DNA of 64,000 nucleotides from Rebecca billardiae RCC1528 (GCA_965240325.2 OZ251231.1:992001-1056000); one strand, 5' to 3'. Shown: positions 35,550-54,791, counted from the stretch's first letter. The notes: generated by a model not told the origin, from the letters alone. Made by a program: numbers and translations.

Positions 35550-37011
35550 CTAGGCACCGCCGCCAGCGATGGTGTTGATCCCAGCCTTTGTCTCGTACTC
35601 CTCGATCGCGCGGAAGAGCTCGTGGAAGTTGCCCTTGCCGAACCCTCCGCACCCGCCCTTCTGCTCGGCCGTGCCGCCCTCGTCGCAGCCGATGCGCTGG
35701 ATGATCTCGAGGAAGAAGGTGGCGCGGTCGCCGACCGGCTTGGTGAAGATCTGCAGCAGCACGCCCTGGTCGTCGCGGTCGGCGAGGATGCCGAGCTTCT
35801 CGCATGCCTGCGCCTGCGCCTCCGAGATCGCGTCCCCTCCCAGCCGCCCGCGCAGCTGCTTGTAGTACTGCGGCCGCGGCCGCTCCATCAGCTCGAAGCC
35901 GCCGCCACCCTGCTCAAACGACGCGCGCATGCGCGCCACGGTCTCGAAGATGGCGTCGGTCTTGAGGGCGATGTGCTGCACGCCGGGGCCGCCGTGCTGG
36001 TCGAGGTATGTCTGGATCTGGGAGCGCCGCTTCCCCCCGCTCGTCGGCTCGTTGAACGGGAGCAGCACCAGCTCGTTGTTCGAGGCGAGCACCATCGAGT
36101 TGAGGCCTGAGAGCGCGGTGCCCACGTCTGCCGCCGGAGGCACGGGGTGGCGCGGGGGGTGGGGGCGGCCCAGTGAGCGCGGGGTGCGGGCGCGCGAACG
36201 GCGCGACGTAACGCGCGTGCGAGCATCGTGCGGCCTCGGCCCGCGCCACCGAGCCCAACAGGCCCGACCGACCGCCGGTGGCGCGCGCGCCGATTGCAGT
36301 TGCCGGGCGCGCACCCTCTGCCGTGAACTCGGCAAACTCGTGCCAGCCCGTCGCGTTCATCACGTACTCGACGGCGTCGAGGAGGCGAGGGACATTCGAG
36401 ACGATGTGGTCCATCCGCGTGAAGCCAAAGCGGCCGGGCGTGCCCTCGGCTCGCGGCACGGCCTCGTAGCCCGGCAGCACACCCGCGCCCGCCAGCGCGT
36501 CTGCGCCGGAGATGAAGCGCAGGACTGCGTCGCCGTCAGCATGGAGGAGTACCTCGGAGACGACGCACTCAGGGGCGCGCTCGGCCGCGCGTGGGGGCGC
36601 ATGCGGCTTCGCGCCGTTCCGCACCGCGAGGTCGAAGGCCTCCCGCGCGTCGGCGACCTGCACACCCACGGCGAACACCGCAAGGCCGTGCGCGGCGATG
36701 TAGCGCTGCATGGCCGCGGGCGAGAGCGAGGCGGTGGGGATGGCGGCGTCGACAGCGTCACCGGAGGAGGTCGGCGCGGTAAAGACGAAGCATACGTCTC
36801 CAGACTGCACGATGTGCGACGAGAACCGACTGTTGCCGGTCGAGACGTTCGAGCGCGCGACGAGGTCAAGGCCAAGTGCGGCTGCCCAGCGCGAGGCCGT
36901 TGTCTGCGCGTCGCCGCAGAGGAACTCGACGTGGTGGAAGGCGCGGAAGTCGAAGCGATCCGTCAGCGGGTTGCTGCGCACAAAGTTGTCGTACCCCACG
37001 AGCTGCACCAT
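35550..37011 (-). CDS. HPPD: 4-hydroxyphenylpyruvate dioxygenase; intron 36128-36314
   Basis: FHHVEFLCGDA, DHIVSNV, EFTAE|DVGTALSGLNSMVL, GPGVQHIAL, LLQIFTKPVGDR and GGFGKGNFHELF. Confidence 0.97.
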
Positions 37012-37308
37012 CGCCCTTTGCGGTGTGGAGTGACGGGTGCGAGGCGCGGTCGCTCGGGGCTGACGGCGGCCGACGCAAAGCACGGCGGATGCGGCTGGAG
37101 TACACCGGGAGCGGTCCTATTTTCAGAGACGAAGCACGGGCGGCCGGCGGGAGAGGTAGTCGCGATCGTCAACTTTGTGTGCAAACCGTCACGCTGCAGC
37201 GAGCGGGCAGCGGCGGCGGTTGGGGCGCGCGGCCAGGTCGGCGGCGCTCACGCCCTTCCGCCGCGCTCTTTGGTTGCGATCGCGCCCGCGCTGCACGCGC
37301 GCCGACCC

Positions 37309-38955
37309 ATGGTGACGGCCGTCGAGTCCGTGGCGCAGGCTGGCGAGGCGCTCAAGAAGCCCGGCGCAGGCGTCGCGAGCCCGTCGCCGCTGCAGTACAT
37401 GCGCGGCTTCGGCAACGCGTTTGAGAGCGAGGCGGTGCCGGGCGTGCTGCCGAGCGCGCAGAACACGCCGCAGCGTGTGGCAGGCGGCCTGTACGCCGAG
37501 CAGCTGTCGGGAACCGCATTCACCGCGCCGCGCGCCACCAACCAGCGCACGTGGATGTACCGAATCGAGCCGTCCGTCGTGCACGCCAAGCATCGGCGCC
37601 GCACGCAGCGACGCGTGCAGGCCGACTTTACGGCGGGCAACTCGTCTGTCGCGGTCGATCAGCTCCGCTGGCGCGCGCCCGAGGTGCCCGCGGCGGACGG
37701 CGAGCGCGTGGACTGGGTGGACGGCCTCGTGACCATGTGCGGCGCCGGCTCCGCCGAGGCGAAGGAGGGCATCGCCGTCCACCTGTACGCGTTCAACGCG
37801 AGCATGTCGGCGGCCGACCGTGCGTTCAGCAACGCGGACGGTGACCTGCTGATCGTGCCGCAGTCGGGCGACCTTCTCGTGACGACGGAGCTGGGGCGGC
37901 TCTCGGTGCGCGTGGGCGAGATCGCGGTTGTCCCGCGCAACATCGCCTTCGCCGTCGATCACGACGATGCCGACGCGGCGGCCGCCCACGGCGGCGCGAG
38001 CGGCGCCGATCGCATCGGCACGCGCCGTCCTGGTGGCGGCTGCAGGGGCTACGTGCTCGAGAGCTTCGCCTCGGCGCACTTCCGCCTGCCCGATCTCGGG
38101 CCGATCGGCGCTAACGGCCTGGCTGAGCCGCGCGACTTTGAGTACCCGTGCGCGTGGTGCGCGCGCGCGCGCGCGCGCGGTGCCTCCCTCGTGCCAGCGC
38201 ACGCACACGGCGCCTGCGCGTGCCCTATGCTCCGCTGCGCCTGCGTCCGCACAGACTCGGCAGCGCGCGGGTGGCACCTGCAGCGCCGGAGGCTCACCGG
38301 CGATTGCGCGCGCGTGCGTGTGCCGCGCGCGGCGCGGCGTAGGTTTGAGGACCGCGCGTGCGACTTCACGGTGACCACGAAGGTCCTGGGCGAGCTCTTT
38401 GACCGGCCGCGCGCGCACTCGGCGTTTGACGTGGTCGCGTGGCGCGGCAACTACGCGCCGTACAAGTACGACCTCTCCAAGTTTGTCACGGTCAACTCGG
38501 TGTCGGTGGACCACCTGGATCCGTCGATCTTCACGGTGCTCACGATCCCGTCGGCCGAGCCCGGCGTCGCCGCGATCGACTTTGTGATCTTCCCGCCGCG
38601 CTGGATGTGCGCCGAGCGCACCTTCCGCCCGCCCTACTACCACCGGAACTGCATGTCTGAGTTTATGGGGCTCATCGACGGCGGGTACGACGCCAAGGTG
38701 GGGTTCGTGCCCGGTGGCTCGTCGCTGCACGGCATCGGCGTGCCGCACGGCCCGGACGCCGCCACGTTCGAGGCGGCGACGCGCGCGGACACGAGCACGC
38801 CAACCAAGTTCACGGCTGGCACCGCGTTCATGTTCGAGACGCGCTGCCACCTGCGCCTGACGGCGTTCGCCGCGGACGACAGCGAGGCCGGACTGCAGGA
38901 CACCGCGTACGCCGAGTGCTGGCAGGGTCTGCGACGCGCGACTCTCGACGTGTGA
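37309..38955 (+). CDS. HGD: Homogentisate 1,2-dioxygenase; intron 38157-38342
   Basis: GLYAEQLSGTAFTAPR, DLGPIGANGLA, DHLDPSIFTVLT, FRPPYYHRNCMSEFMG and HGPD. Confidence 0.97.
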   Translation: MVTAVESVAQAGEALKKPGAGVASPSPLQYMRGFGNAFESEAVPGVLPSAQNTPQRVAGGLYAEQLSGTAFTAPRATNQRTWMYRIEPSVVHAKHRRRTQRRVQADFTAGNSSVAVDQLRWRAPEVPAADGERVDWVDGLVTMCGAGSAEAKEGIAVHLYAFNASMSAADRAFSNADGDLLIVPQSGDLLVTTELGRLSVRVGEIAVVPRNIAFAVDHDDADAAAAHGGASGADRIGTRRPGGGCRGYVLESFASAHFRLPDLGPIGANGLAEPRDFEYPCAWCARARARGASLVPAHAHGACACPMLRCACVRTDSAARGWHLQRRRLTGDCARVRVPRAARRRFEDRACDFTVTTKVLGELFDRPRAHSAFDVVAWRGNYAPYKYDLSKFVTVNSVSVDHLDPSIFTVLTIPSAEPGVAAIDFVIFPPRWMCAERTFRPPYYHRNCMSEFMGLIDGGYDAKVGFVPGGSSLHGIGVPHGPDAATFEAATRADTSTPTKFTAGTAFMFETRCHLRLTAFAADDSEAGLQDTAYAECWQGLRRATLDV

Positions 38956-39105
38956 TCCATGTCGTTCGTAGTACCAACCCACGAGGCCGTCCCTGTCGTC
39001 AGCCATCGTGATTCGCGTGTCGGTAGTCCATTTCGCGTGAGTCGCGAAATGGACGACACACGAATCACGATGGGGCGTGAGTCGTAAGAAGGCGAGCGAA
39101 TCACG

Positions 39106-41004
39106 ATGGCGGCGGCGGCCGACGATGGCGAGTCGTGGCCCGCTGTGCGGCGGGCACTCTTGCTCCCGGCATACTTGCCCGTGGCGCTGCAGATGTTCGC
39201 CGAAACGATCGCACTCCCCGTCGTGCCGCTTCACGTGCACTCACTCGGCGGCTCAGACGCAGTTGTGGGCGCAGTCGTCGGCGCCGGCCTCCTCGGCTCG
39301 CTCGTGGTCTCGCCCCCGGCGGGATTGCTCGTTGCGCGCGTCGGCGTGCGTGGGGCCATGCTTCGCGGTCTAGCGATCTACATGTTCGCATCGCTTGTCT
39401 TGGCTTGCGTCAGCTCGCTCGGCGCGTTTGTGTGCGCACGGGTGCTCGCAGGATGCGGCGGCTGCATCGCCATGGTGGCGCGACAGGCGTACCTCGCTGC
39501 GCGCGTGCCGGGCACGATGCGCGGCAAGGCGGCCAGTCTCATCGGCGGCGTGATCGCGATTGCTGGAGCCGCTGGGCCCGCCGCGGGCGGCGTGCTGTAC
39601 GGGCGGTACGGCACGGCGGGCGCCTTTGGGGCGCAGGCAGCCGTGCACCTTGCAAACATAGTGCTCGTGGCGCGCGCGATGCCGGCACTGCCGCCGCGCA
39701 GCGGCGAGGGCGGCAGCCGGCAGTCGGCGGTGCGCCGGTGGCGTCGCCGCGCTGCCACATGCTTGAGGCGCCGCCGTGGCCGGGCGCTCGCCGCGGCCGA
39801 TGCGGCCACGGCGCTGCCGCCCGCAGAGGACTGCAACGGCGCCGCGCCAGCGGCAGACGTGGCCGAGCGCTGTGCGGCCCCTGCTGCGGGCGCGGCGCCG
39901 TTGCAGCCCGCTGCCGGCGCGCCGTGCGTCTCGGAGCGCGCCGTGCTGCTCGTGCGCGTGCTGCCCGTCGTCTTCGTCCTCGTGACGCTGCGCAGCATGC
40001 GCAACCTGCTGCTCCCTCTCAAGGCACTCTCCCTCGGCTTCGACGAGTCGTCGACCGGCGCGCTCGTGACGGTGGCGTACGGCATGCAGGCTGTCTTGTT
40101 CCCTCTGGCCGGGCTGCTCATGGACAGGTGGGGGCGCAAGGCGAGCGCGGTGCCCTCGCTGGCGATCACGGCACTCTCGTTCCTCGTGCTCGCGCGCGCG
40201 CGCACAACCGCCGCCGCGTACGCCGCCGCCACCCTGGGCGGCCTCTCGAGCGGGATCGTCGCCGGGCTCGTCCAGGCGTTGGGTGCTGATCTCGCGCCGC
40301 CGGCCTCCCGCGCGCAGTTCCTGGGGAAGTACAAGGTGGTCTGCGATCTGGGCGCGCTGGTTGGCTCGCCCGCGGTCGGCGCGATCTCGAGCTGGGCGTC
40401 GCTGGACGCGGCGTGCGTGAGCGTCGCGCTCGTCGCGCTGAGCGGCGCGGGCTGGTACCTCTTCCTCGGGGTCGAGACACTTCCCGGAAGTGGCGCGGGC
40501 GCGGGCGCGGGCAAAGGCGCCAGCGGCGAACACCGCGCGCGAGCAGCGCTCGGCACACCTCTCGCGCGGCTGATGCGCGCCCTGCGGGCTCGCGCACGGC
40601 GGCGTGGCCGCTTCGCGCCGCTCGCCCGCACCGAAGGGCCCTCCGGTGCGGCACGCACAGCGCACGCGCCCAAGCCGCCGCATCTCGGCGCCGGCGCTGG
40701 CGGCAGCACGCTGGAGGACTGGGGAGCGGTCCTGGCGACCAGCTCGGCCGCAGCCGCACTCGCGGCGGCTGCAGACGATGGTGTTGTCACCGAGCTGAGC
40801 CCGGAAGAAGAGGCTGAAGAGGGCGAAGACTGCGCGGACGAGATGGCGAGCGACGAGTCTGGCGATACATCTGGCGGCGAGTCTGACGACGCTGACGATG
40901 GTGCCGATGGGGACGCAGGCCCGCTCGCGCCTGTGCCTGCGGGCATGGAGCTTGCGCCGGTGCCAGCCTGGGTGCCGCAACACCCGGCGGATGATGCCGC
41001 CTGA
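39106..41004 (+). CDS. MFS transporter
   Basis: About 12 hydrophobic segments in two halves; motif-A-like GLLMDRWGRK; acidic tail. Confidence 0.85.
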   Translation: MAAAADDGESWPAVRRALLLPAYLPVALQMFAETIALPVVPLHVHSLGGSDAVVGAVVGAGLLGSLVVSPPAGLLVARVGVRGAMLRGLAIYMFASLVLACVSSLGAFVCARVLAGCGGCIAMVARQAYLAARVPGTMRGKAASLIGGVIAIAGAAGPAAGGVLYGRYGTAGAFGAQAAVHLANIVLVARAMPALPPRSGEGGSRQSAVRRWRRRAATCLRRRRGRALAAADAATALPPAEDCNGAAPAADVAERCAAPAAGAAPLQPAAGAPCVSERAVLLVRVLPVVFVLVTLRSMRNLLLPLKALSLGFDESSTGALVTVAYGMQAVLFPLAGLLMDRWGRKASAVPSLAITALSFLVLARARTTAAAYAAATLGGLSSGIVAGLVQALGADLAPPASRAQFLGKYKVVCDLGALVGSPAVGAISSWASLDAACVSVALVALSGAGWYLFLGVETLPGSGAGAGAGKGASGEHRARAALGTPLARLMRALRARARRRGRFAPLARTEGPSGAARTAHAPKPPHLGAGAGGSTLEDWGAVLATSSAAAALAAAADDGVVTELSPEEEAEEGEDCADEMASDESGDTSGGESDDADDGADGDAGPLAPVPAGMELAPVPAWVPQHPADDAA

Positions 41005-41224
41005 CGGCGGAGTTGTCGGCCGCTCATCAGGTTCGCCAGGGTGGTGAGTGATGATCGGTGAGTGGATTGTCCGGGAGGATCCGGCGGAAGGCGTGCGGAA
41101 AATCCGCGAAGCAGAACAAGCTTCAACCAACGGCGATACCGCCCTTGCTTCAACCGCGCTGTTTTTCGCCGAGGTCCTCCAGCTGTCCACTTTTTCATGC
41201 GCTGATCTCGGCGAGTCAACGGCC

Positions 41225-42343
41225 ATGGGCGCGTGCGGCTCGACAAATGGTGCAGACGGAGAGCCTAGAACAGGCGGGGGCTGGTTTCCTCTCGGCAGTA
41301 ATAAGGACAGCGGCAGCAACACGGCGCTCAAGGTCCCGCACGCCATCCCTGTCGCGCTCACGACGCTGTATCGCGTCTCGACGGCGGGCACCGCGCTCGT
41401 CGGGGTCTGCCTCCTCGTCGCCAGTCTCCAAGCGCCGCTGGTCGTGCTCGCGGGCGGGGGATCAGCGCAGGAGTACCAGAGCATCAGTGCGGTCCTTTAC
41501 GACTACGAGTCGGCGCCGGGCCGCCTCTTCGCCGCGCTCTGCACTTTTGCGAGCTTTCTCAATCTAATTACGTTGCATCCGTTCTGGCTTGCGCCGCCCG
41601 CTCAGGATGGGCTGCCTCTGCGCATGGACGCTTGCTGTGGCGTGTTTGGGGCCTGCTGCGCATGTTGCCGCCCAAACATTGACTTTCCTCGCCAAGTGTG
41701 GCCACTCGGGCAGCAAGGTGCGCTGCGCTGGGCGTGGCTCGCGTCGCAGTCCTTTGCACTCCTCCTGCTGGCGTGCATGCGGCCCAGCAACGTTGACGGG
41801 GGGCTCCTCAACGCGCTGATGGGGCATCTGGTGAGTGACCTTGGCGCAGTGGCGGTGCTGTTTGTCAGCCTCGTGCTCGAGGCCATCGTACTCCTCACCC
41901 AGAGCGCCGCCGCGCGCGTGACGGCCCGGCTGGTCGCAGTGGCGGCTGGGCTCCTGTGCGCGCTGCTCTTCATTACGATGTATGCACTGGGCTGCATGGG
42001 CTTGCGGCCGTCCGCGGTGTGCCCTGCACCGCTCGGTACGCTCGGCTTCGTAGCCGAATCGCTGCTGTGCGCGTGCGTCGCTCTTGACTTTCTCTTCGCT
42101 GCCGCGCGGCAGAAGCTCTCGCTGGACGCCGGCCATGATGACCCGGGCGGCTCGATGCTCACAGGCATCGCAGTGATCGGCACCCTCGATCCGCCGCGAG
42201 GTGTGCCCATGCACGAGCAAATGCCTGCCGCCCAGCCAGCACCAGCAAAGGCCGCGGCAGGGCCAGGAAAGCAGGCGGCTGCAGCCACGAAGGCGCCGGC
42301 GGGGCGCAGCAGTGTGGTGGCCGCGGCCGCGCCGATGCAGTGA
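41225..42343 (+). CDS. Multi-pass membrane protein (weak Frag1/DRAM/Sfk1 resemblance), possible N-acylation motif MGACGS
   Basis: About six hydrophobic segments in a long ORF; the family call is tentative. Confidence 0.55.
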   Translation: MGACGSTNGADGEPRTGGGWFPLGSNKDSGSNTALKVPHAIPVALTTLYRVSTAGTALVGVCLLVASLQAPLVVLAGGGSAQEYQSISAVLYDYESAPGRLFAALCTFASFLNLITLHPFWLAPPAQDGLPLRMDACCGVFGACCACCRPNIDFPRQVWPLGQQGALRWAWLASQSFALLLLACMRPSNVDGGLLNALMGHLVSDLGAVAVLFVSLVLEAIVLLTQSAAARVTARLVAVAAGLLCALLFITMYALGCMGLRPSAVCPAPLGTLGFVAESLLCACVALDFLFAAARQKLSLDAGHDDPGGSMLTGIAVIGTLDPPRGVPMHEQMPAAQPAPAKAAAGPGKQAAAATKAPAGRSSVVAAAAPMQ

Positions 42344-43296
42344 TGACGATTGACGACCGATCTGAGCATCAGGCGGACTGTTAACTATAATAATCAGACT
42401 GACGAATGTAAAGACTGCTACTCAGCGTATCTGTCTAGCAGGCTCAGTCGCTAGCAGACTCAGAGTGATGACCGACTCCACGACTTTGATAAGTCTCTAG
42501 TAACTAGTACTAATAAATAAATAAATACAGCAAATTTAAAATATTATTAATTAAGTGACGATGAGCTTATAGTGCATGAGCAGTCGTCCGATTCGGCGGC
42601 CGATTCGCGGCTCAGTAGTCAGTCCACGCGGCACGGGCCGCCACCGCCGCGGCCCGGCACCGCCGCAGATCGCGACGGAATCCTGCTGCCGCCCCGGATT
42701 GAAGTGCTGACGATATAACATTAATAAATTGAACGACGCGGTCCGAGCAGGCGCGACTGATGCGCTGTGCCACTGATGATCTGATTCCATAATGTGATGA
42801 TCCATCATTGCCGGATCGCCATCAGCAGCAGCATCAGTCGTCAGCAGAGTCAATCAAGCTAGATAGAGTCGTCGTGACGGATAACAGTCATTACATCACT
42901 GGTTAACACCGGACTCGCCAGCGGAAATTAAGTATAACGACAGTATATCTACTAGCGCCGAAATTCGACGCGACGATCGATTAAGCTGTACACCCGCATC
43001 ATTCCGACATTATCACATTATTGTCTGCACCGTGACTGGAATCCGCAGGAGACCCGGTGTGAGTGTGACCTCGTCCTAGCTTACTAGTTACTCCTACGGC
43101 GGCTACCGTGCTGTGTGCCGTTTAACTTTTTTAATTAAACTACTGCTAAGGCCGCCGTCACTCTACTACCGTTACCGAGTAAGTATAGAATGAGTACACG
43201 GTAGGGAGCTCGATCTGGTGCCACGGCTGCCCCGCGCGCTCGCCACAGTCAGTCTGCCGAGAATGATGGCGCCGATGGCGATTTATAGTATTTTAG

Positions 43297-43406
<110 letters not shown>

Positions 43407-43546
43407 CTAATAAGGCGTGAGTGTGACTGGTGTCGTCGGACTGCCGAAGTGGCGGCTGCCGGCCGCCCGTCTCAGACAGGCAGCCTGGTGAGGAGCCCGC
43501 CGCGCTCGACAAGCCCGCGGAGCCGACCGCGAGGTACGCGTCCACT

Positions 43547-44371
43547 TTATGTCGAGCGCACGCTGCGGTCAGGCCGAGGGAGGTCGAAGGTTGTTCCCGT
43601 GCGCCCATATGTGTCCCCGCCCAGCCGGCTGAGCGGCTGGTAGTCTTCAAAGCGCACGGTCGGCTTGCCTGGCCCTGCGCCCTCGGGCTCGAGCACCGCG
43701 GTGGCGACGTGCACGAGCACGACCTCGCCGAGGATGAGCGTAGCCGTCACCTGCCCGCTCGCGTTCTTGATCTCGTGCCGATGCGTGAGCTTGCACTCGA
43801 AGTGCACCGCCGACTCGCCGACGCGCGGCGGCCCGACGCGCTCCGACGGCAGCCGGGTGAGCCCCGCCTGGTCGAATTCGTCGACATCGCGCGCGAAGGC
43901 GCCGCAGCAGTGGTTTGCGCTCTCGACGAACCACTCGCTCATGATGCACACGACGAACTCCCCCGTCTCGTCGATGTTCGCCAGCGTGTCCTTCTTGCGG
44001 TCTTCAGTGCGCTGGTTGGCACACACAGAGAAGCCGATTGTGGGCGGGTCGTGCGCGAAGCAGCCGGAGTATGAGAAGGGGGCGAGGTTGCCACCGTACT
44101 TGTCGGAGCGCGTGCTCACGAAGGCGATCGGCCGCGGGACGAACGAGGAGATCATCAGCCCGTAGCAAGACGCCAGCTCCTTCGGATCCAGGCGCGTGTG
44201 CGACTTGTCTGCGAACGGGAGCGGCTGGGGCGTGCCCGGCTTCCACGACGGGTGCGGTGGTGGTGTGACACGCACGGCGTGCGCGTACAGGCGCCGCCAC
44301 CACCAGCGCAAGGCTAGGGCGCCGCCCACCGCCCCCGCACACGCGCAGAGCTGCGCAGCTCCTGCCTGCAT
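43547..44371 (-). CDS. Flavin reductase-like (FMN-binding split-barrel, flavoredoxin-type) protein with N-terminal hydrophobic anchor
   Basis: VPRPIAFVST, NLAPFSY, KDTLANIDETGEFVV, PPRVGESAVHFECKL and PLSRLGGDTY. Confidence 0.9.
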   Translation of the reverse strand: MQAGAAQLCACAGAVGGALALRWWWRRLYAHAVRVTPPPHPSWKPGTPQPLPFADKSHTRLDPKELASCYGLMISSFVPRPIAFVSTRSDKYGGNLAPFSYSGCFAHDPPTIGFSVCANQRTEDRKKDTLANIDETGEFVVCIMSEWFVESANHCCGAFARDVDEFDQAGLTRLPSERVGPPRVGESAVHFECKLTHRHEIKNASGQVTATLILGEVVLVHVATAVLEPEGAGPGKPTVRFEDYQPLSRLGGDTYGRTGTTFDLPRPDRSVRST

Positions 44372-44580
44372 CGTTCGCCTTCCGCCGGCCTCGGACGGTG
44401 TTTCGGCGCCTTTCCAGCGGCCGTGTGCGGTTCACGGCCGGTTGCTTGGGAAGCCCGTTGCAGCGACGAATTCTCCTCCGCGCTTTTTTTCGCGTGCTGC
44501 GCGCTCATCCACGCCCCAGCCGGCCGGCCGGTCGGCGAGAGGAGAGCGCGCGCGTCGGCATTCACGCCCGGTGCGAGGCG

Positions 44581-45891
44581 ATGTCGGAGGTCCGCACGCC
44601 GTGCGTCGTCAAATCGGCGAGCAGCTCGCTCTTCCCACTCGAGAACCTCCCCCTCGGCGTCTTCGAGACGGCGGGCCTCGGTCCACGCGTCGGCGTTGCC
44701 CTTGGCGATGTCGTCGTAGACTGCCGCGCGCTCGTGCGCGACGGGCTCCTCGAGGCAGACGGCGCGCATGCGCTCGGATCGGAGCGCGCCAGCCTGGACG
44801 AGTACCTTGCGCTTGAGCCGAGCGCATGGGCCGCCACGCGCGCGGCGCTCACCGCCCTGCTCACGGCTGGCTCCTCGCTGGACGAGGCTCGCGGCGGGCT
44901 CGGCAGCCATGCCGTGCCGCGCGCAGACGCGCGCATGCTGATGCCGTTCACGGTGGGCGACTACACCGATTTCTACTCGTCGATCGACCACGCGCGCAAC
45001 GTCGGCACCATGTTCCGCGGCGCGGCCAACGCCCTCAACCCCAACTGGACGTGGATGCCGATCGCGTACCATGGCCGCGCGTCGTCTGTCGCGGTGAGTG
45101 GCAGTGCGGATCCTCGCCGGCCGTGGGGCCAGCTCGCGCCGTCGGAGGCGGGGGGTCGGCCGTCGTTTGGGCCGTCAGCGCAGGTGGACTACGAGCTCGA
45201 GCTCGGCTTCGTCATCGGCGGCCCGCCCAACCCGATCGGCGAGCCTCTCCGGCTGCGCGGCGGCGACGCCGAGCGTCGCATCTTTGGGTCCGTGCTCGTC
45301 AACGATTGGAGCGCGCGCGACGTGCAGCGCTGGGAGTACGTGCCGCTCGGCCCGTTCACGTCGAAGAACTTCCTCACGACAATCTCGCCGTGGGTCGTCC
45401 CGCTCGCCGCGCTCGAGGCCGCGCGCTGCCCGCTCCGCGAGCCCGAGGGCGACGCGCTCGAGTACCTCGCACTCGACGCGGCCGCGCGCGGCCGCGGCGC
45501 GCTCGACATTGCGCTGGAGGTCGGGCTCTCGCACCGGGGCGCGTGGGCGGGTGAGGCGGTGGTGTGCCGGGGGAACGCGCGCACGTTGTACTGGTCCGCG
45601 GCGCAGCAGGTCGCGCACCACACCGTGACCGGCTGCAACCTGCGCCCGGGCGACCTGCTCGCCACTGGCACCATCTCAGGCCCTGAGCCCGAATCTGGCG
45701 GCTGCCTGCTCGAGCGCACGTGGCGCGCCGAGCGGCCGCTGCCGATGCCCGACGGCTCGAAGCGCGGCTTCCTCGAGGACGGGGACACCGTGGCCATCCG
45801 TGGCGTCGCGCGTGGGCCCAACGGCGCGCAGATTGGCCTTGGCGAGTGCGTCGGCACGCTGCTGCCCGCCGCCACGGGTCCGCCCGTGTAG
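44581..45891 (+). CDS. FAH: Fumarylacetoacetase
   Basis: FPLENLPLGVF, GDYTDFYSSIDHA, YHGRASS, DYELE, NDWSARDVQRWEYVPLGPF and GDLLATGTISG. Confidence 0.97.
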   Translation: MSEVRTPCVVKSASSSLFPLENLPLGVFETAGLGPRVGVALGDVVVDCRALVRDGLLEADGAHALGSERASLDEYLALEPSAWAATRAALTALLTAGSSLDEARGGLGSHAVPRADARMLMPFTVGDYTDFYSSIDHARNVGTMFRGAANALNPNWTWMPIAYHGRASSVAVSGSADPRRPWGQLAPSEAGGRPSFGPSAQVDYELELGFVIGGPPNPIGEPLRLRGGDAERRIFGSVLVNDWSARDVQRWEYVPLGPFTSKNFLTTISPWVVPLAALEAARCPLREPEGDALEYLALDAAARGRGALDIALEVGLSHRGAWAGEAVVCRGNARTLYWSAAQQVAHHTVTGCNLRPGDLLATGTISGPEPESGGCLLERTWRAERPLPMPDGSKRGFLEDGDTVAIRGVARGPNGAQIGLGECVGTLLPAATGPPV

Positions 45892-46214
45892 CCGCAGCTG
45901 CCCGCTGAAACGTGCGAGGTGAAGTTCGGAGGAGGTTCCGGCCCGCTGCCATTGTCAGCCGTGGTCCTGCAAACATCACTCTGGGTCAGCCTGGCCTCGA
46001 AAGCCCCTGCCTGCCAGCCAATTTGTGAGCAGCGGTCATGTAGTTGGGCTCGCGTCCAGGCACTGCCAAGGCGGTGGTGACCGTCAGTCAGGCCGTCGCG
46101 GCGCTCACCAGGCTCGGCCGCGACCTGACGAGAAATCGATGCGAGCAGGAAGATGCGCGCCGCATCCATGAAAAAAAAACCAGTACGCCATCAAAAAAGG
46201 ACGACGAAAGCAGA

Positions 46215-47699
46215 ATGGGGCACGTGCATCCTGTCCGCGACGCGCTGGGCGCCGCCGGCCCGTTCGGCGCGGGGTGCGAATCCAGCTCATCGGCGGTGGA
46301 GGTCGCGCACATCAGCCCCCAGGACACGAGCACGTCGGACCCCGCCGCGCCCTCGGACGAAGCGCCGGGCGTGGAGGCGTACGCGCCCTGCGAGAGCTGC
46401 CTGTCCGGCGAGCAGCTCGACGCGCACGTGAGCTCGGCGTGGGAGTGGTACGCGTCGGTGGGCTCTCCCCGGCGCTGGCTCGCGCCGCTCGTCGGCTACT
46501 CGGACGCGGCCTTCCGCCAGCTCGCGCGCGAAGCCGGCGCGGAGATGGCCTCCACGCAGATGCTCGACGCCGGCGGCTGGTGCCGCTCCGCCTCGTACCG
46601 CGCGCAGCACGCGCTCGACTCGGACAGCGGGCCGCTGATCGTGCAGCTCGGCGGCTCGGTGCCCGAGCACCTGCGCGCCTCGGCCGCTCACATCGCCGCG
46701 AGCCACCCGCGCGTCTGCGCCGTCGAGCTCAACCTCGGCTGCCCACAGCGGTGCGCGCGCAAGACGCGGATGGGCGCCTACCTCGCCGAAGACGTGCCCA
46801 ACCTGCGCGCGTGCGTGCTCGCGCTGCGCGCGGGCGTGGCGGAGGGCAACGCGGCGCGGCGCGCGGCGGGGCATGCCGTGCGCTGCGCCGTGCTGACCAA
46901 GGTGCGCTGCTTCGCCGAGCTCGAGCGCACGCTCGCCTACGCCCGGCTGCTCGAGACGCTGGGCTCCGACCTCGTCACAGTCCACGGCCGCACGCGCCAC
47001 TGGGGCGGCGGCCGGCGCACGGGGGCGAATCTCGCGCGGTGGGAGTGGATCCGCGCGGTGAAGGAGGCCGTGCGCGTGCCGTGCGTCGCGAACGGCAACA
47101 TCCGCCACGCCGCGGACGCCGCCGCGTGCCTGGCCGCCACCGGATGCGACGGCTTCATGTCCGGGGTCGGCGCGCTCAAGCGGCCTCACGCCGTGTTTGC
47201 ACCGCCCGGCTGCCCGCCCCCGTTCCCCTCGCGCGCGCACGCCGCGGCGCGGTACTTGGACATCGCCGTGGCGCGCGGCGAGCTGCCGAGGAACGCGCAC
47301 GTGCACCTCATCGGCAAGCTCGCGCTCGTGCGCCTCGCGCCCGAAGCGCACAGCCGAGATGCCGCGGCCGCGCACAGCGCTCGGCGCAAGGCTCTCAACG
47401 CGCTCGCGACGCTGCGCAGCTGGGCCGAGCCTCGCGCCTCGGCGCTGCAGCGGGACGCGGCGGCAGCCCTGGAGCAGCTGTGCGAGCAGGCCGCGTCCGA
47501 CACACGCGGCGGTGGCGTTGAGGCCGGCCTGCTCTCGGACAGCAGTGCGGATGAGGCCGATGACGCGGACGACTACCCAGATCACAGCAAGTGCGCGCTC
47601 AACGCGTCGTCAGGCAGCGGCACTGGCGGCGGCGACCTGCCACAGGCTGGCGGCGGGCAGCTCCCGAATCCGATGCGGAGTGATGGCATCGACGAATGA
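46215..47699 (+). CDS. tRNA-dihydrouridine synthase family protein (DUS1-like)
   Basis: LAPLVGYSDAAFR, PLIVQLGG, ELNLGCPQ, VTVHGRT and VANGNI. Confidence 0.9.
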   Translation: MGHVHPVRDALGAAGPFGAGCESSSSAVEVAHISPQDTSTSDPAAPSDEAPGVEAYAPCESCLSGEQLDAHVSSAWEWYASVGSPRRWLAPLVGYSDAAFRQLAREAGAEMASTQMLDAGGWCRSASYRAQHALDSDSGPLIVQLGGSVPEHLRASAAHIAASHPRVCAVELNLGCPQRCARKTRMGAYLAEDVPNLRACVLALRAGVAEGNAARRAAGHAVRCAVLTKVRCFAELERTLAYARLLETLGSDLVTVHGRTRHWGGGRRTGANLARWEWIRAVKEAVRVPCVANGNIRHAADAAACLAATGCDGFMSGVGALKRPHAVFAPPGCPPPFPSRAHAAARYLDIAVARGELPRNAHVHLIGKLALVRLAPEAHSRDAAAAHSARRKALNALATLRSWAEPRASALQRDAAAALEQLCEQAASDTRGGGVEAGLLSDSSADEADDADDYPDHSKCALNASSGSGTGGGDLPQAGGGQLPNPMRSDGIDE

Positions 47700-48270
47700 G
47701 CTAGTATGTATGAACTATATCTGACGACGATTGCTGGCGGCATGTTGTCATCGCAGTCGTCGCTGCTATGACTCCAATAAGTTGCTGCAATCTCATTGGC
47801 CGCAAAAAATCGCTTGTAATAACGGGTCGTTACGCTACGCATCCTAAAGGACGTAACTCGTAAGTTTTTTTGGACGGGCGTCACAGTCCGTCACACGGCA
47901 CTCTTTACTGTTGAATCTGTGAACGTGCCCATTAATTTCAGCTAATCAACCTCTGAAGCAGGAGGTCTCAAAATTCGAAACTCGGTCTCCTCCAGCCCTG
48001 AAAATCGTCCCCGTCCCTTTTTTCTTGATCAAAGATCTTTTTGAAACGTGGTTAGGGCCCGCACTGCGGGCTCCCGACGCTGCGCGCTCCGCCCTGCACC
48101 GCGGGCCATATAGTAATGTATGATGTATTGCTTGCATCATCAGCATCAGCATCAGTACGCACGATCTTCACAATCGTGCGAACTGGCGATGATGATATCT
48201 GATCACGGGCACGCACGACGCCGATTAGATCCGTGCTGCAGCCTTGTCAACTGCGAAGTGACCGCGCGGC

Positions 48271-49367
48271 TTACGGCGACGACTCGACGCCGCCGCCAAA
48301 CGGCGCGTTTGCGTTGGGGTAGCCCGCACCGCCGACGGAGTAGTCCTTCTTCGGCGTTGGCTCCGGCTTGCCCTGCCGCCGCGCGTCGAGCCCGTCCCAG
48401 AAGACCTGGATCGCGTCGAGGATCTCCTCGCAGTTGTCGAGGAACTTGTCCTCGTCGCACACGCGCCCGCTCAGGTACACCTCCTTGAGCTCGTCGAGGG
48501 TGTGGTCGGCATGCTGCGCCTCGAGCGCGGCGTGGTGGACCCAGAAGCCGATCGGCACGCGCTTCTCGCGCCGCGCGTTGATCCCCTTCCACCCGTCGAC
48601 CAGCTCATCCCAGAAGCCCGCCGCCGCCCAGTTCTCGACCGCGTACGACGCGGCGAGCGCCGTCTCCGCATCCTCCGAGCCGTACAGCACCTTGAGCGCG
48701 TCGCAGAAGTGAAGCGTGGAGGGGCAGCCGTGCCGCCGGGTGCCCATCGCGTCGAAGGGCACGCCGAGCGACTCGCCGATGTCGAGCAGCCACTCGTAGT
48801 GCCCCGCCTTGAAGTGGAACACGCCGCCCTCCACCGAGCCCTCGGTCGACACGATCTCCTTGTCCAGGCCGTCCACCGCGGCCGCCGCCTTGACCGACGG
48901 CTTCTTGTTGTTGTTGAAGACGACGCCGAGCTCGTTGGCCAAGATCTCCTTGCCCTGTGTGGCATACGCGCGCGTGGAGGGCGCCACCCCGCGCTCGGTG
49001 TCAGCCGCACTGCGCTGCGCGCGCGCACGCGCGCGCAAACTCAGCGAGGGGCGCGCGCCATGCGCACCTCGCGCATTTCGTCGAGCGAGGGCGCATTGAT
49101 GACCTTGGCGAGCTGCGCCTCGAGGAAGAGATTGCTGAACACGGAGAACTGCACGGTCAGGTCCCGCGCCTCCGCGTCCGACACCTCGCCCTTGCTGTAC
49201 CATGCGGTGTACGCGTTGTTCCGCACGACCGGGTGCGACATCACCTTCGACTGCACGCGCTCGACGAAGGCGGGCCATGTGGCGAGCTTGGCGCTCGCGG
49301 GGACGCTGGGCGCCGCCTGGTAGCCGAGGACCACCGCCGCAGGGAGGACGAGGGCGAGTGCGGGCAT
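48271..49367 (-). CDS. Heme-oxygenase-like dimetal enzyme (PqqC/TenA/CADD superfamily) with signal peptide; intron 48955-49067
   Basis: HPVVRNN..QFSVFSNLF..MRE|GKEILANELG..HYEWL..ASYAVEN..FWVHHAALEAQHADH shows the E/H/E/H/E/H ligand spacing of this fold. Confidence 0.7.
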
Positions 49368-49775
49368 TGCGTGCGCGACGGGACGCGGCGCGAGCGTGGA
49401 CGGGGTCTCCTCGCGGCGGAAGCGGACACCGACGGTCCAAGCCGGCGGCGGTGGTCAACGTCTGCCCGGCCGGTGGGTGCACGTCCACTCGCCCAGCGAG
49501 GGAGAGTACCTTTTCGTGACTTCGTTTGGGGCATCTGAACAGCCTCAACTTGCCCTCTGATTCGGCGTTGCTGTGTTGCCGATTCCGCAGGTGATTTCTG
49601 AGATTGCAGCCGCTTTTCGTGGCTGACATCACAGGTGAGAGCCGCTGTTGCGTCACCACACTGGACGTGACGCTCCACCGGTCATCCGGCTAGCTCTGGC
49701 GGGGAAGGGCACCCACGACCGCGCCGCCGCTGTGTTCACCGTTCGACCCCCGCCACGTCCGCCGACTTGGACCAC

Positions 49776-51185
49776 ATGAACGGGCACACGCATGCGGAGC
49801 GCCCCGCGCTGAGCGCGATCGGGCGGGCGAGCGCGCCGAACCAGATCAAGTCGCTCATCGCCCCCTTCGTCGGCGTCGGCGACATCGCCCACCTCGCCCA
49901 AGGCGCGCCGCCGCCCTCTGTGTTCCCGATCACTGGTCTCCAGCTTGAGCTCGCGGACGGCAACGTCGTGCGCGTCGGCGCCGAGGTGATGGCGGCCGCG
50001 CAGCAGTATCAGTACGCGCGCTCGGGGTACACGCCGCTACTCGAGTGGTGCAGGTGCGCGCCCTGCGCGCGCGCTCTCCTTGCACCACCCCCAAGGACGC
50101 CGTCCCGCGCGCTCCGTGCTCACAGCTCTTGCGCGCGCCCCCGCCCCGCGCCTGCGCACCACAGGGACTTCACGGCGAAGCACCACCGCGAGCGCGGCGA
50201 GTGGGAGGTGGCACTGCACGCAGGTGGGACCGACGCGATCGCCAAGCTGATCGAGGTGCTCTGCGACCCGGGCGACGTCGTGCTGTGCGAGGCGTACACG
50301 TGGTCGACCGCGCTCGACGGCATGCGCACGCACGGGGTGTGCCTCGCGGGCGTCGAGGTGGACGAGGCCGGGATGGTGCCCGCCGCGCTCGAGCGCGAGA
50401 TCACGCGCGCCGAGGCCGCAGGGCAGACGATCAAGGCCCTCTACATCGTGCCCAACGGCTCCAACCCGTGCGGCACCACGCTCGCGCCCGAGCGGTTTGC
50501 GCAGATCTACGCGCTGTGCTCTGCGCACGGCATCCTGGTGATGGAGGACGACCCGTACTGGTGGCTGGGGCTGGGCGGCGCGAAGGAGCCGCTCCCCGGG
50601 CCGGCGACGTCGTTCGCCTCCATCGACACCGACGCGCGCGTCGTGCGCATCGACTCGTTCGCCAAGTGCGTCGCGCCGGGCTTCCGGCTCGGCTGGCTCT
50701 CGGGGCCGCCGCGCATTGTGCACGCGTTCAACGCCGCCTCCTCCACGTCCACGCACAACGGCTCGCCGTTCGCGATGGCGGTGCTGCACGCGCTGCTCGA
50801 GCACTGGGGCGAGGCCGGCCTGCACGCGCACATCGAGAGCACGCGCGCGGAGTACCGCCGGCGGCTTGGCGTGGTGCTTGGCGTCGCGCAGAAGCAGCTG
50901 GCCGGCCTCGCTGATTGGTCGACGCCCAAGGCGGGGATGTTCCTCTTCCTCGACCTCTCGCCCTCGGGGGTGCAGGAGTCGACCAAGCTGATGCCCAAGC
51001 TGCGCGAGTACCGCGTGCTCACCATCCCGTCGGCTGTCTTCTCCCCGAGCGGCACGCCGTCGCCGCACATGCGCATCTCCTTCTCGCAGGCCAGCGACGA
51101 CGACATCGTCAAGGGCGTCAGCCGGCTGGCCGATCTGCTGCGCGAGCACAAAAGTGCCCCGTCGACGGTGGGGGCGGGCAGCTGA
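49776..51185 (+). CDS. PLP-dependent class I aminotransferase, Aro8/AADAT-like (aromatic or 2-aminoadipate type); intron 50054-50164
   Basis: LYIVPNGSNPCG, EDDPY, RIDSFAKCVAPGFRLGW, PKAGMFLF and MRISFS. Confidence 0.92.
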   Translation: MNGHTHAERPALSAIGRASAPNQIKSLIAPFVGVGDIAHLAQGAPPPSVFPITGLQLELADGNVVRVGAEVMAAAQQYQYARSGYTPLLEWCRCAPCARALLAPPPRTPSRALRAHSSCARPRPAPAHHRDFTAKHHRERGEWEVALHAGGTDAIAKLIEVLCDPGDVVLCEAYTWSTALDGMRTHGVCLAGVEVDEAGMVPAALEREITRAEAAGQTIKALYIVPNGSNPCGTTLAPERFAQIYALCSAHGILVMEDDPYWWLGLGGAKEPLPGPATSFASIDTDARVVRIDSFAKCVAPGFRLGWLSGPPRIVHAFNAASSTSTHNGSPFAMAVLHALLEHWGEAGLHAHIESTRAEYRRRLGVVLGVAQKQLAGLADWSTPKAGMFLFLDLSPSGVQESTKLMPKLREYRVLTIPSAVFSPSGTPSPHMRISFSQASDDDIVKGVSRLADLLREHKSAPSTVGAGS

Positions 51186-51454: not shown

Positions 51455-53897
51455 CTATGCAAGGCCGGTACCGTGACGCTCCGCGTCGCCGAGCCCAGCC
51501 ACTGAGGCGCTGCTTATCGACTGTGAGTGGGCGCGCGCCGCGGCCGCTGCTGTGGCCGCGGCCAATCGCGCGTCCACGTTGTCAGCGATCCGCGCGATGT
51601 CGGAGACAACCCGATCCGTGAGCTCGTGCCCGTGGCCGCTCACGATGGTGAGCAGGTCTGAGATCATCATCTCGTTCCCCAGGATGTCCACGTGGTCCGC
51701 CGAGCTCGAGCCGCGCAGCTTCGGCCCGCTGCTCTCGCTCGGCTGCGTCACAAACTCGCGCGTGACGACGCGCGCGCCCGACGGGTTGTACATCCGGCTC
51801 CTGCGCCAGCCGCTGGCGCACATGTAGCCCATGGACACGAGGGGGATGGTGCCGTCGCCGTCCGTGAGCCGCACGCCGTTGACGAGGTCGCGCGCGCGGT
51901 CGTTGGCTTGCCGATCGATGAGGTAGGGCACCTCGTCGACGATGGCGGCGGCGGCGGCCTGGTCTGCGCCCTCCGCGGCGGCGGCGGCGCCGGCGGCTGC
52001 GGCAGCTTCGGGGTCTGTCTCCGCGTCCGTCGGCTGTGAGGCCACCATCTTGGACTGCACGCCCGGCGTGGCGCCCGCCGCCGCTGCGCCCGCGCGCGGG
52101 CCATCGACCACCACGTACGCACGCTCGGTCTGCTGCCCGACGCCGTAGAGGCAGTGCACCGTCATGTTGGGCGCGAAGGGCAGCGGCGCCTTGAGCGGGT
52201 TGATCCACGCGCTCTCCTCCGGGTGGAGCAGCCCGCCGGGCGAGCCGACATCGTTCAGGTCGTACCAGTACCGAAATCGCTTGGTGACCGTGTCGTCGGC
52301 GGCCGCCTCGGAGCGGAGGGCGTCCTGCTCGAGCTGACGCAGCGACTCGGGCACGGTCAGCACGGGCGTGAGCGAGCCGTCGGGCGCGCGCTTGCTCAGC
52401 AGCGCGCCGAAGCTCGGCTGCGACGTCGCGCGCTGCGGCGCCCGGCAGCTCTGCGCCGCAGCGGCGAGCCCGTCCGCGTTCGCGTCGCAGCGCGTGTCCT
52501 CGGCTCCCGGCTCCGCCAGTGGGTCGTCGGGCGCGCCGTCCTCGTCGCCCCAGATCGCCGCCCCGCCCATCGGCAGCAGCGTCTGCGTCGAGGGGAACGA
52601 GCGCATCAGCCGCCGCCGCTTTGCCGCCGAGAGCACCGAGTCGAGCATCGAGCCTAGGAAGCCCGTGATGTAAGTGAAATCGCGCGACTCGCCCATGAGC
52701 AGTCCGGTCGCGCCCTTGGGCGTGCCGAGGGTGGGCGGGCCGATGAGCACGACCGCCTCGATGTGCTCGTGCACCCAGGCGGACGAGAGCCGCCCGCCGT
52801 GCGGCGACGAGATCCACTGGCTGAAGTACTGCCACACCGTCGCGCCCATCGAGTGCGCGACCACCGCCACCTTCCGGCCGTGCACCTGTCGGCAGGAGAT
52901 GGTGCGCGCGAAGTGTGAGTGAGCGCGCCATGTTGCGCTGCGGCGCTCAGAACGTGCGCGCGCGTACTTGTCGGAACATCTCGATGTGGTAGCGCAGCCG
53001 GCTAAAGTACTGGTCGCGGCGCTCGAGCTGGTGGTAGGGCAGGCGCCAGTCGTACGCGGCGACCCACGCGTTGCTCGGGCTGTACCCGATGTCCGCCAGG
53101 TTCTCGATCACCTGCGCCCACACCCAGTACCCGCCAACGACGTAGTCGGCCGCCTCGAAGCCCTGCGCGGCGCGCAGCTTGATGCCGGGCGGGTCGTCGC
53201 CCGTCAGCGCGTCGAGCTCCATGTGGCGCAGCCAGCACTCGCGATCGAGCGTGAAGAGCTTGATCATCGAGAGCGTGCCCCACACGCGCTGCCTGAAGTA
53301 CGACTTGGCGCACTTCTGCCCGGACCACATCTCCAGACCGGTCGAGATGATGCCCGGGAGCATCACGACGGGCAGCTGCGCGCTCCAGCCGCGCTCGGCG
53401 GCCTGCAGGCCCGGCCGCGTGGGCGCCGCGGGGCGCGGCTCGGCCTGCGAGGCGTTCGAGCCCTGCCCCATCGCAAAGTCGGGCAGCACGGACAGCTGCT
53501 CCAGCAGCTGCGAGATGGGCGCGTCGAACTTGCTCAGCTCGTCCACGATCGCGTTCACGAGCGGCGTGGCGGGCGTGGCGACCTCCACGCGATGTCCGGC
53601 GTACATCACGGCGGCGGCGCCGATCAGGATGCCGACGATGAAGGCAAACCGCTTCTTTGACAGCCGCTCCTGCGCCACCGCCAGCCACGAGCCCTCGTCC
53701 ATCGGTAGGATGGGCATGGATGCAGACAAGCGCGCGATGGGCACGCCACCGCCGCCGGACGGCTGCTCAGGACGGGCGAAGGCGCCCTCCGATCGCGAAC
53801 GATGCGGTGCGCGAGGGGAGGCGTGCGCGGGCTTGGCGCCATCTGGAGCCTCGCCGCCGTCCGCGTCCTGCTTCGCGGCGACGCGCGACCTGCGCAT
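51455..53897 (-). CDS. PDAT: Phospholipid:diacylglycerol acyltransferase (LCAT/LRO1 family); intron 52886-52967
   Basis: PVVMLPGIISTGLE, AAYDWRL, AHSMG, CLYGVG, GDGTIPLVSMG and HVDILG. Confidence 0.93.
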
Positions 53898-54149
53898 GCC
53901 GGCCGCTGGTCCAGGACTCGCCCGCGCTGCGCGCCCTGCCGTCTCCAGATTTGTCCAGATGCATCACGCCCTCCGGTTTTCCGTGCTTCCGGATGCGGCA
54001 GCGGACGCACGGCCGTGCGTCCGTGGGCGACTGGGCGTGGGCCGTGAGAGCTCTTTCTCCGGTTGCTCAGCCCGGCTGCACGACCACCCTTGGCTGCACC
54101 AGCGTGGGCGTGGGCCAAGCGGGCCGTCGTGGCCTCACCCGCTCGCAGG

Positions 54150-54791
54150 ATGGCTCAGCTCCTGGCCCAGCTCATCGAGGCGCTGCGGCAATGGATGGCG
54201 GCGAATCGGCCTCTGTGCTACGCCATCGTGGCGGGGCTGCTTGCTGCGTACCTCATGTACCGACCCCCACCGCCCCCGGACCGCCGAGACGGCGGATGCC
54301 GCACGCCCTCGCGCCAGCCGAGCTCCACGCGCCCCAAGATCAGCATCTCGGCGATGGGCGGCGTCCTCCTCGACGGCGAGGCGTCAGGCGGGCTGCGCGT
54401 GGTGGCGAAGGCGGTCGAGGCGGTCCGTAAGCTCGCCGAGTACGGCGACGTGTACCTTATCGCCGGCAACGTCACTTCGGACGCGGCCGAGAAGGCCGTG
54501 CGCGACACGCTCCAGCGTGAGGGGGTGCTGGCCCTGCCAGGCATCGACGCGCGCAAACTGCTCGTGTGCTCGAGCTCCATCGGCCGCACGGCGATGTGCC
54601 GGCAGATCGAGCCCGAGCTACACGTAGACGAGGCGCTCGACGTCGTGGAGTCGCTCGCTCCGCACGTGCCCTGTGTTGGGCATGTCGGTCCGTCAGCAGC
54701 GCCCAGCAAGCGTGACAACGTGCACGTTGCGTCGGACCTTGGCGAGCTCGTCGACGTCTTCTTGGCGACGCGGTCCGAGCTGGTCTCCTGA
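54150..54791 (+). CDS. PEX22: Peroxin PEX22 (plant-type)
   Basis: N-terminal TM segment; KLLVCSSSIGRTAMCRQIEPELHVD matches the recalled plant PEX22 motif KVLFCSTEIGRTSFVRQLEPDWHID. Confidence 0.78.
   Translation: MAQLLAQLIEALRQWMAANRPLCYAIVAGLLAAYLMYRPPPPPDRRDGGCRTPSRQPSSTRPKISISAMGGVLLDGEASGGLRVVAKAVEAVRKLAEYGDVYLIAGNVTSDAAEKAVRDTLQREGVLALPGIDARKLLVCSSSIGRTAMCRQIEPELHVDEALDVVESLAPHVPCVGHVGPSAAPSKRDNVHVASDLGELVDVFLATRSELVS

Follow-up and report, generated by a model that had tools for sequence, protein, structure and literature searches.

A probable tyrosine/homogentisate catabolic gene cluster around a divergent HPPD-HGD pair in a haptophyte nuclear genome

The 64,000-nucleotide stretch of Rebecca billardiae RCC1528 DNA analyzed here (GCA_965240325.2 OZ251231.1:992001-1056000; hereafter the window) carries several tyrosine-degradation genes close together, which raises the question of whether they form a catabolic gene cluster and how such a cluster could have arisen. 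An initial annotation of the window had proposed that HPPD, HGD, FAH and an Aro8/AADAT-type aminotransferase lie within 15.6 kb in the company of an MFS transporter and uncharacterised enzymes, and had called three degradation steps certain (HPPD, HGD and FAH) and a fourth, the aminotransferase, plausible. All four genes are found at positions 35550-51185, the MFS gene and genes for a flavin-reductase-domain protein and a heme-oxygenase-like (HO-like) protein are identified alongside them, and the gene identities hold. We judge it likely that the locus is a host-encoded tyrosine/homogentisate catabolic cluster which was built up in situ in the nuclear genome of a haptophyte, with an old divergent HPPD-HGD pair as its core.

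Pathway genes of the locus

Inspection of positions 35550-51185 reveals nine genes, including the four named enzymes, in a window of ~70% GC where strong third-position GC periodicity marks the coding stretches. The genes form three head-to-head pairs, namely HPPD with HGD, the flavin-reductase gene with FAH, and the HO-like gene with the aminotransferase. HPPD adjoins HGD, FAH lies three genes on (5.6 kb downstream of HGD) and the aminotransferase lies three genes past FAH (10.8 kb downstream of HGD). That is to say, at least three tyrosine-pathway enzymes are physically clustered in the window. The features of the locus are as follows, where ORF denotes open reading frame:

35550..37011, minus strand: HPPD of plant type, 424 aa, exons 37011..36315 and 36127..35550, with plant HPPD matches in PDB
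37012..37308, no strand: HPPD-HGD divergent promoter region, 297 bp between start codons, holding GACGAAGCACGG (37128) and CTTCCGCCG (37255)
37309..38955, plus strand: HGD, 486 aa, exons 37309..38156 and 38343..38955, Pfam HgmA_N and HgmA_C
39106..41004, plus strand: MFS transporter of the drug:H+ antiporter (efflux) type, Pfam MFS_1
41051..42343, plus strand: multi-pass membrane ORF lacking any family match, 430 aa, start codon uncertain, called from hydrophobic segments and codon periodicity
42344..43546, no strand: AT-rich spacer of 1.2 kb between the cluster halves, called from composition, with (TA)52 at 43298-43402
43547..44371, minus strand: flavin-reductase-domain protein, 274 aa, Pfam Flavin_Reduct
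44581..45891, plus strand: FAH (fumarylacetoacetase), 436 aa, single exon, TIGR01266 equivalog and PDB FAH matches
46212..47699, plus strand: Dus (tRNA-dihydrouridine synthase) homologue, Pfam Dus
48271..49367, minus strand: HO-like protein, 327 aa, exons 49367..49068 and 48954..48271, HO-like fold in a model of the L014 homologue
49776..51185, plus strand: class I aminotransferase of the AADAT/KAT II/Aro8 family, 469 aa, PDB AADAT/Aro8 matches and Pfam Aminotran_1_2

The two halves of HPPD occupy different frames, and each matches plant HPPD in the PDB (E 1e-52 for the N-terminal half, 9e-74 for the C-terminal half). Scores for the C-terminal half fall to 2e-33 against mammalian and to between 1e-14 and 1e-30 against bacterial enzymes (Pseudomonas 1e-14); the protein is classed as plant type, since plant HPPDs resemble it more closely than animal or bacterial ones do. 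Its segments DHIV, GVQHIAL and FFLEIIQR, which we take to hold the HPPD Fe ligands (His, His, Glu), align with plant HPPD. Removal of a 187-nt GT-AG intron in phase 1 (36314..36128) restores the junction ...FAEFTAE/DVGT... as in plant HPPD, and no N-terminal presequence is found on the protein.

HGD carries both Pfam domains (HgmA_N, E 2e-96; HgmA_C, E 2e-64) and matches human HGD at E 1e-126. Alignment with relatives reveals a junk insert of ~62 aa exactly between ...PCAW and FEDR..., which corresponds to an in-frame, 186-nt GT-AG intron (38157..38342). Invariant columns fall at H425, E431 and H460 (numbering of the unspliced translation), which presumably correspond to the His/Glu/His iron ligands of the human enzyme. 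Judged by its domains and ligand columns, the predicted product is homogentisate 1,2-dioxygenase. The HGD intron is free of stops as well as in frame, and naive ORF calling reads through it, as do prokaryote-style calls on Logan contigs. All three introns found at the locus (HPPD 187, HGD 186 and HO-like 113 nt, with 5' ends at 36314, 38157 and 49067) are of the GT-AG type and have the donor GTGCGC in common.

FAH scores 460.5 bits against the TIGR01266 equivalog (cutoff 375.3) and matches FAH structures in the PDB over its full length (E 1e-109 to 1e-112). With a score above the equivalog cutoff and both the FAA_hydrolase_N and FAA_hydrolase domains of Pfam, it is assigned as a true fumarylacetoacetase (EC 3.7.1.2). 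No GST/MAAI domain is attached to the window FAH. A tblastn search of the 64-kb window with four GST-zeta domains from FAH-MAAI fusions gave no match better than E ~1.5, and Pfam scans detected no GST among the periodicity-supported window ORFs. The MAAI step may be encoded elsewhere in the genome or bypassed.

The aminotransferase, which bears no presequence, has its best PDB matches in human AADAT/KAT II (E 5e-60) and in Aro8 of fungi (E 3e-44 to 8e-39), and its SFAK segment aligns with SFSK of AADAT; we take this segment to be the pyridoxal-phosphate-lysine motif. The enzyme is a candidate for step 1 of the pathway, in which tyrosine, its putative substrate, would be converted to 4-hydroxyphenylpyruvate.

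Linkage in relatives and placement of the host

The nearest HGD and FAH homologues occur in Diacronema lutheri (Pavlovophyceae), in MMETSP transcripts and in Prymnesium parvum. In the HGD tree, all carriers of a head-to-head HPPD-HGD pair fall into one clade with 100% support, apart from plants, green algae, oomycetes, chytrids, animals and bacteria. This clade divides into two subclades, one with the window, D. lutheri and the environmental contig L013, the other with P. parvum and the environmental contig L014. Since the window HGD groups with D. lutheri in a clade that also holds P. parvum, the host is placed among the haptophytes and is most likely a pavlovophyte, with D. lutheri as the closest relative that has been sequenced. 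The algal-type nuclear genome proposed by the initial annotation is thereby narrowed to a haptophyte one by the nearest homologues and the HGD tree.

Conserved linkage in relatives, which the initial annotation had named as a check on its cluster, is borne out for the core pair. HPPD and HGD are head-to-head in five taxa, counted as the window, D. lutheri, P. parvum, L013 and L014 (the last with L015 and the ERZ27265164 contig), and one of the two environmental relatives has all five pathway steps. The pair is HPPD(-) and HGD(+) with a 148-bp spacer in D. lutheri (L001), where an AADAT/Aro8-family aminotransferase follows 1.1 kb downstream of HGD. The P. parvum spacer (L003) measures about 74-75 bp, and no other pathway genes occur within 10 kb of the pair there. 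No HPPD is found within 10 kb of HGD in the green alga Auxenochlorella (L011) or the oomycete Phytophthora kernoviae (L012). Because the pair is present in both HGD subclades and absent in these two organisms, it is old and probably ancestral to haptophytes, and it is not a general eukaryotic feature.

The L014 cluster is complete within ~12 kb. It comprises an AspAT/TyrB-type aminotransferase head-to-head with an FAH-MAAI fusion, the HPPD-HGD pair, an HO-like gene, a thioredoxin-like ORF and a Trp/Tyr permease. The fusion (L014:5507-7549, also on L015) is a 680-aa FAH with a C-terminal GST-zeta MAAI domain, which matches solved MAAIs at E 2e-37 and contains an SSCSWRVRIAL motif. FAH-GST fusions, which join two consecutive last steps, recur in other representative proteins (P0276, P0291, P0325, P0326). 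The L014 HO-like gene is intronless, lies 0.5 kb downstream of HGD, shares 53% identity with its window homologue and has no AADAT-type aminotransferase beside it. Across L014, L015 and the ERZ27265164 contig, which come from three separate samples, the HPPD-HGD pair is present and FAH is linked to tyrosine genes.

The window and these environmental contigs thus have in common an HPPD-HGD core, the HO-like family, a nearby FAH and an aminotransferase head-to-head with another gene. L014 differs from the window in holding all five steps, in its FAH-MAAI fusion, its AspAT/TyrB-type aminotransferase and its Trp/Tyr permease, in having no flavin-reductase gene, and in gene order and orientation. 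Near the HPPD-HGD pair, three different kinds of aminotransferase are found in three taxa, namely the AADAT-type enzyme of the window, the AADAT/Aro8-family enzyme of D. lutheri and the AspAT/TyrB-type enzyme of L014. The window aminotransferase is probably not orthologous to the cluster-adjacent aminotransferases of its relatives; a word-based search with it returned no D. lutheri protein. The transporters also belong to different families (efflux-type MFS in the window, MFS_2 on L013, Trp/Tyr permease on L014).

Part of the locus is seen a second time in public data. The Logan contig L002 (run ERR14847151) matches the window with 99.47% identity over 6777 bp, spanning 35752-42523, and independently confirms the order HPPD-HGD-MFS-ORF, with the MFS and membrane ORF 100% identical. 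Over 6.8 kb, 9 substitutions and 2 indels separate the two sequences, the indels presumably in the HGD intron region; L002 probably represents a different strain or haplotype of the window species. DNA run X1, consulted for FAH, gave a handful of short high-GC matches and a single contig of 151 nt.

Two short motifs recur in the promoter regions. The 12-mer GACGAAGCACGG occurs once in the window (37128-37139) and twice in the P. parvum HPPD-HGD spacer (L003:9967 and 9989, 22 bp apart); it is found nowhere else in the fetched loci, save the same-species L002. A degenerate copy is seen near window position 37072-37085. The 9-mer CTTCCGCCG/CGGCGGAAG has four copies in 64 kb (37255-37263, 41082-41090, 44379-44387 and 49414-49422), all at 5' ends of cluster genes, and three of the four sit in the three divergent spacers. 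In the 21 kb from D. lutheri it appears just once, in the HPPD-HGD spacer (L001:9900). Random region triples reproduce the spacer pattern of CTTCCGCCG at a rate of ~0.004. L013 and L014 contain neither motif. The shared promoter motifs are suggestive only.

Proposed assembly of the cluster and alternative explanations

Taken as a cluster assembled in place, the locus would work and would have grown as follows. One promoter region of 297 bp could drive both HPPD, which makes homogentisate, and HGD, which consumes it, and such sharing would keep the producer and consumer of this auto-oxidising intermediate in step. The cluster would have been built stepwise, with lineages adding different parts in different orders; FAH would have joined here and, as a fusion with MAAI, in L014. 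Chance does not readily account for such repeated recruitment of the same functions from non-orthologous genes, and the pattern fits selection for co-inheritance or co-regulation; we infer that the cluster genes are co-regulated. The physically coupled genes flank reactive intermediates, homogentisate for HPPD/HGD and fumarylacetoacetate for MAAI/FAH (fused in L014), which fits the toxic-intermediate explanation. That explanation has been proposed for fungal clusters.

Several observations weigh against a cluster of this kind. MAAI is not in the window, and an unrelated Dus gene and two membrane proteins are interspersed among the cluster genes. In D. lutheri FAH lies on another scaffold, and in P. 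parvum it shares a chromosome with HGD but is ~1,100 locus tags away, which means that the linkage of FAH is not an ancestral trait. Identity between the window aminotransferase and the one in the D. lutheri cluster is just 34%, and the HO-like-aminotransferase pair occurs on short contigs (L006-L010, 3-9 kb) that hold no HPPD or HGD. Support from L002 ends at 42523, and the joins at 42.3-43.5 and 47.7-48.3 kb rest on one assembly. The motif evidence was found post hoc.

Weighing these points requires a closer look at the HO-like gene, which stands head-to-head with the aminotransferase across a start-to-start spacer of 408 bp. Its 113-nt GT-AG intron (49067..48955) leaves a spliced model collinear with the intronless L014 homologue. 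Pfam Haem_oxygenas_2 matches the window protein weakly (E 0.035) and the L009 orthologue at E 2e-4, and Atlas features agree. For an AF2 model of the L014 homologue, of mediocre quality (pLDDT 60), all top Foldseek PDB matches are HO-like (TMt 0.65-0.76, with weak E-values of ~1e-2), with TenA, BesC, CADD, UndA, PqqC, PolF and HrmI as the top folds. The protein also shows the pattern H-x3-E-x2-H along with other conserved E/H residues, possible candidates for the carboxylate/His dimetal site that marks the seven-helix heme-oxygenase-like dimetal oxidases (HDO: UndA, BesC, CADD, PolF). The modeling points to an HO-like (TenA/PqqC/CADD/UndA/BesC) fold for the product of 48271-49367, where a metal-free TenA- or PqqC-like form is possible. 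HO-like N-termini are hydrophobic and signal-peptide-like and then turn aromatic (...VVLG/YQAAP at window 49290-49367, ...SSVHA/FELKP at L006 ~5300-5363). Read by eye, they resemble the bipartite plastid-targeting signals of secondary-plastid algae.

The alternative that survives best, which we hold to be somewhat doubtful and yet worth serious attention, assigns the aminotransferase and the HO-like protein, and perhaps the flavin reductase too, to a separate pathway, possibly of non-proteinogenic amino-acid metabolism or aromatic oxidation, that would simply adjoin the tyrosine genes, with the real tyrosine aminotransferase encoded elsewhere. Kynurenine and 2-aminoadipate are further substrates of AADAT-type enzymes, and the best NCBIfam matches of the window aminotransferase are MppQ/MocR-like, far below cutoff. 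The HO-like-aminotransferase pair is moreover kept in at least two other high-GC taxa (L006-L008 and L009-L010, with coordinates L006:4294-6930 and L009:2238-4736), at 71-76% aa identity for the HO-like protein and 58-63% for the aminotransferase, on contigs that lack FAH as well as HPPD and HGD. Those contigs are only 3-9 kb long, however, and linkage beyond them is possible. The L014 HO-like gene, so near HGD and with no AADAT-type partner, provides a second and independent link between this family and tyrosine genes.

A narrower alternative, which we regard as unlikely, is that only the HPPD-HGD pair is functional as a unit, while FAH and the aminotransferase, each under its own control, lie near by chance in a very gene-dense genome (~2.5 kb per gene). 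The unlinked FAH of D. lutheri and P. parvum would fit this account, as would the Dus, MFS and membrane-ORF genes and the 1.2-kb AT-rich spacer that intervene. The chance of finding FAH within 10 kb of the pair, however, is ~6e-4, as estimated from a genome size of at least ~31 Mb (496 annotated windows). FAH is also linked independently in L014, in another order and fused to MAAI; three kinds of aminotransferase sit beside the pair in three taxa; and the rare 9-mer CTTCCGCCG is common to the three divergent spacers.

Recent transfer of a bacterial hmg/hpd operon appears very improbable. After haptophytes, the next-best FAH matches are bacterial metagenome-assembled genomes (MAGs) at 52-55% identity, yet FAH matches mammalian and bacterial FAH structures equally and the match list mainly mirrors database content. 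Spliceosomal introns interrupt HPPD, HGD and the HO-like gene, HPPD is assigned to the plant type, the HGD clade stands apart from bacterial sequences, and the genes are divergent rather than co-directional. Here the initial annotation's preference for in-situ assembly over recent operon transfer agrees with the GT-AG introns, the plant-type HPPD, the placement of HGD in one clade with its D. lutheri and P. parvum homologues, and the content that differs between relatives. A bacterial origin of FAH, considered on its own from the match list, was set aside: the MAG-dominated list is uninformative, and the mammalian and bacterial structures score equally.

An assembly error joining unlinked loci is equally hard to credit: the (TA)52-bearing AT-rich spacer at 42344-43546 is a typical assembly break site and is unbridged by public reads, while L002 covers 35752-42523 at near identity and FAH is linked to tyrosine genes in L014/L015 and ERZ27265164 as well (three samples).

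The flavin-reductase-domain protein (Pfam Flavin_Reduct, E 1.6e-24) matches NTA-monooxygenase component B (E 2e-25) and the NbaA nitroreductase (E 2e-18) in the PDB, has a hydrophobic N-terminus, and is encoded head-to-head with FAH across a 209-bp spacer. A role as MAAI substitute was considered and is unsupported, as the domain is an ordinary Flavin_Reduct/NtaB/NbaA-like one and L014 covers the MAAI step by its FAH-MAAI fusion. The MFS transporter (Pfam MFS_1, E 3.5e-42) has a long acidic C-terminal tail, and its best NCBIfam matches are efflux families, all below cutoff. The membrane ORF at 41051..42343 has no Pfam or NCBIfam match; hydrophobic segments are evident in its translation, and its codon-position GC periodicity fits coding. 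Any pathway role of the HO-like, flavin-reductase, MFS and membrane-ORF genes is putative; by position, the flavin-reductase gene and the membrane ORF are candidates for aromatic amino-acid catabolism. The Dus homologue (Pfam Dus, E 7e-45; NCBIfam DusB, 115 bits, below cutoff) is probably an unrelated housekeeping bystander within the cluster.

The remaining window ORFs in the Pfam scan have no connection with tyrosine breakdown (BK channel, ankyrin, kinase, proteasome subunit, TBCC, LrgB, LCAT and Pex22-like). On the right flank, these include an LCAT-family acyltransferase at 51458-53963 (-), which is split over two frames and so probably intron-bearing, and a Pex22-like HAD-domain gene at 54048-54788 (+). 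The (TA)52 repeat is a perfect microsatellite (TRF) amid an otherwise 70% GC genome.

A bolder interpretation, which we offer tentatively and consider improbable as a whole, is that haptophytes carry an ancient, still-remodelled tyrosine supercluster built on a bidirectional HPPD-HGD promoter with conserved cis-elements, in which homogentisate metabolism includes the HO-like protein as a hitherto unrecognised component that the flavin-reductase-domain protein may reduce. The HO-like protein could be an HPPD accessory like fungal HmgX, or could provide a new oxidative step that feeds or drains aromatic 2-oxo acids to or from homogentisate. Its partnership with the flavin-reductase-domain protein is speculation.

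Comparison with known clusters and biological meaning

Metabolic gene clusters are well documented among eukaryotes in fungi and plants; to our knowledge, algal ones are few and concern mainly nitrate assimilation. In plants and animals, tyrosine is degraded by the same five-step pathway and enzyme families, with the genes dispersed. Bacterial homogentisate operons link HPPD, HGD, FAH and MAAI, often with a transporter, as co-directional, polycistronic and intronless units. The window resembles the bacterial hmgABC/hpd operons in the physical linkage of HPPD, HGD and FAH with a transporter nearby. Unlike them, its genes stand in divergent pairs, contain spliceosomal introns and are of eukaryote-type sequence.

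The closest likeness is to fungi. The cluster described here is a haptophyte variant akin to the described fungal tyrosine-degradation (TD) cluster, which in Aspergillus and Penicillium has the content hppD-hmgX-hmgA-fahA-maiA-hmgR (PMC3914699, PMC3203155). In many ascomycetes hppD and hmgX are reported to be under a bidirectional promoter, and some fungal variants (TD-BX) hold an MFS transporter (PMC3914699, PMC3203155). Both systems are eukaryotic and nuclear, serve the same pathway, combine HPPD, HGD and FAH, use divergent promoters and vary in content between lineages. Each also has an accessory protein of unknown family beside HPPD/HGD, and the MFS transporter of the window recalls TD-BX. 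In contrast, origin and gene order are independent, and the haptophyte HPPD is of plant type. Unlike fungal TD-E, the window is without maiA (MAAI), and no Zn2Cys6 domain, and with it no regulator of that kind, is detected among the scanned window ORFs. Unlike the fungal clusters, it includes an aminotransferase, and its accessory genes encode HO-like and flavin-reductase-domain proteins. In full-text literature searches, descriptions of tyrosine clusters turned up for fungi and bacteria alone and none for haptophytes or other algae, which is not proof of novelty.

The locus presents a primary catabolic pathway clustered in a phototroph, with its core pair kept in both main clades of the HGD tree. 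It flags uncharacterised proteins with a possible part in the breakdown of aromatic amino acids, among which the HO-like gene is backed by synteny. Haptophyte tyrosine loci also offer a natural test of whether clustering and fusion guard cells against reactive intermediates, given that the HPPD-HGD pair flanks homogentisate and the FAH-MAAI fusion flanks fumarylacetoacetate. The cluster might also, as the initial annotation suggested, apportion homogentisate to breakdown on one side and to prenylquinone or pyomelanin synthesis on the other. In algae the homogentisate pool also feeds plastoquinone and tocopherol, and a promoter shared by the enzyme that makes homogentisate and the one that consumes it would therefore be a concrete and testable control point.

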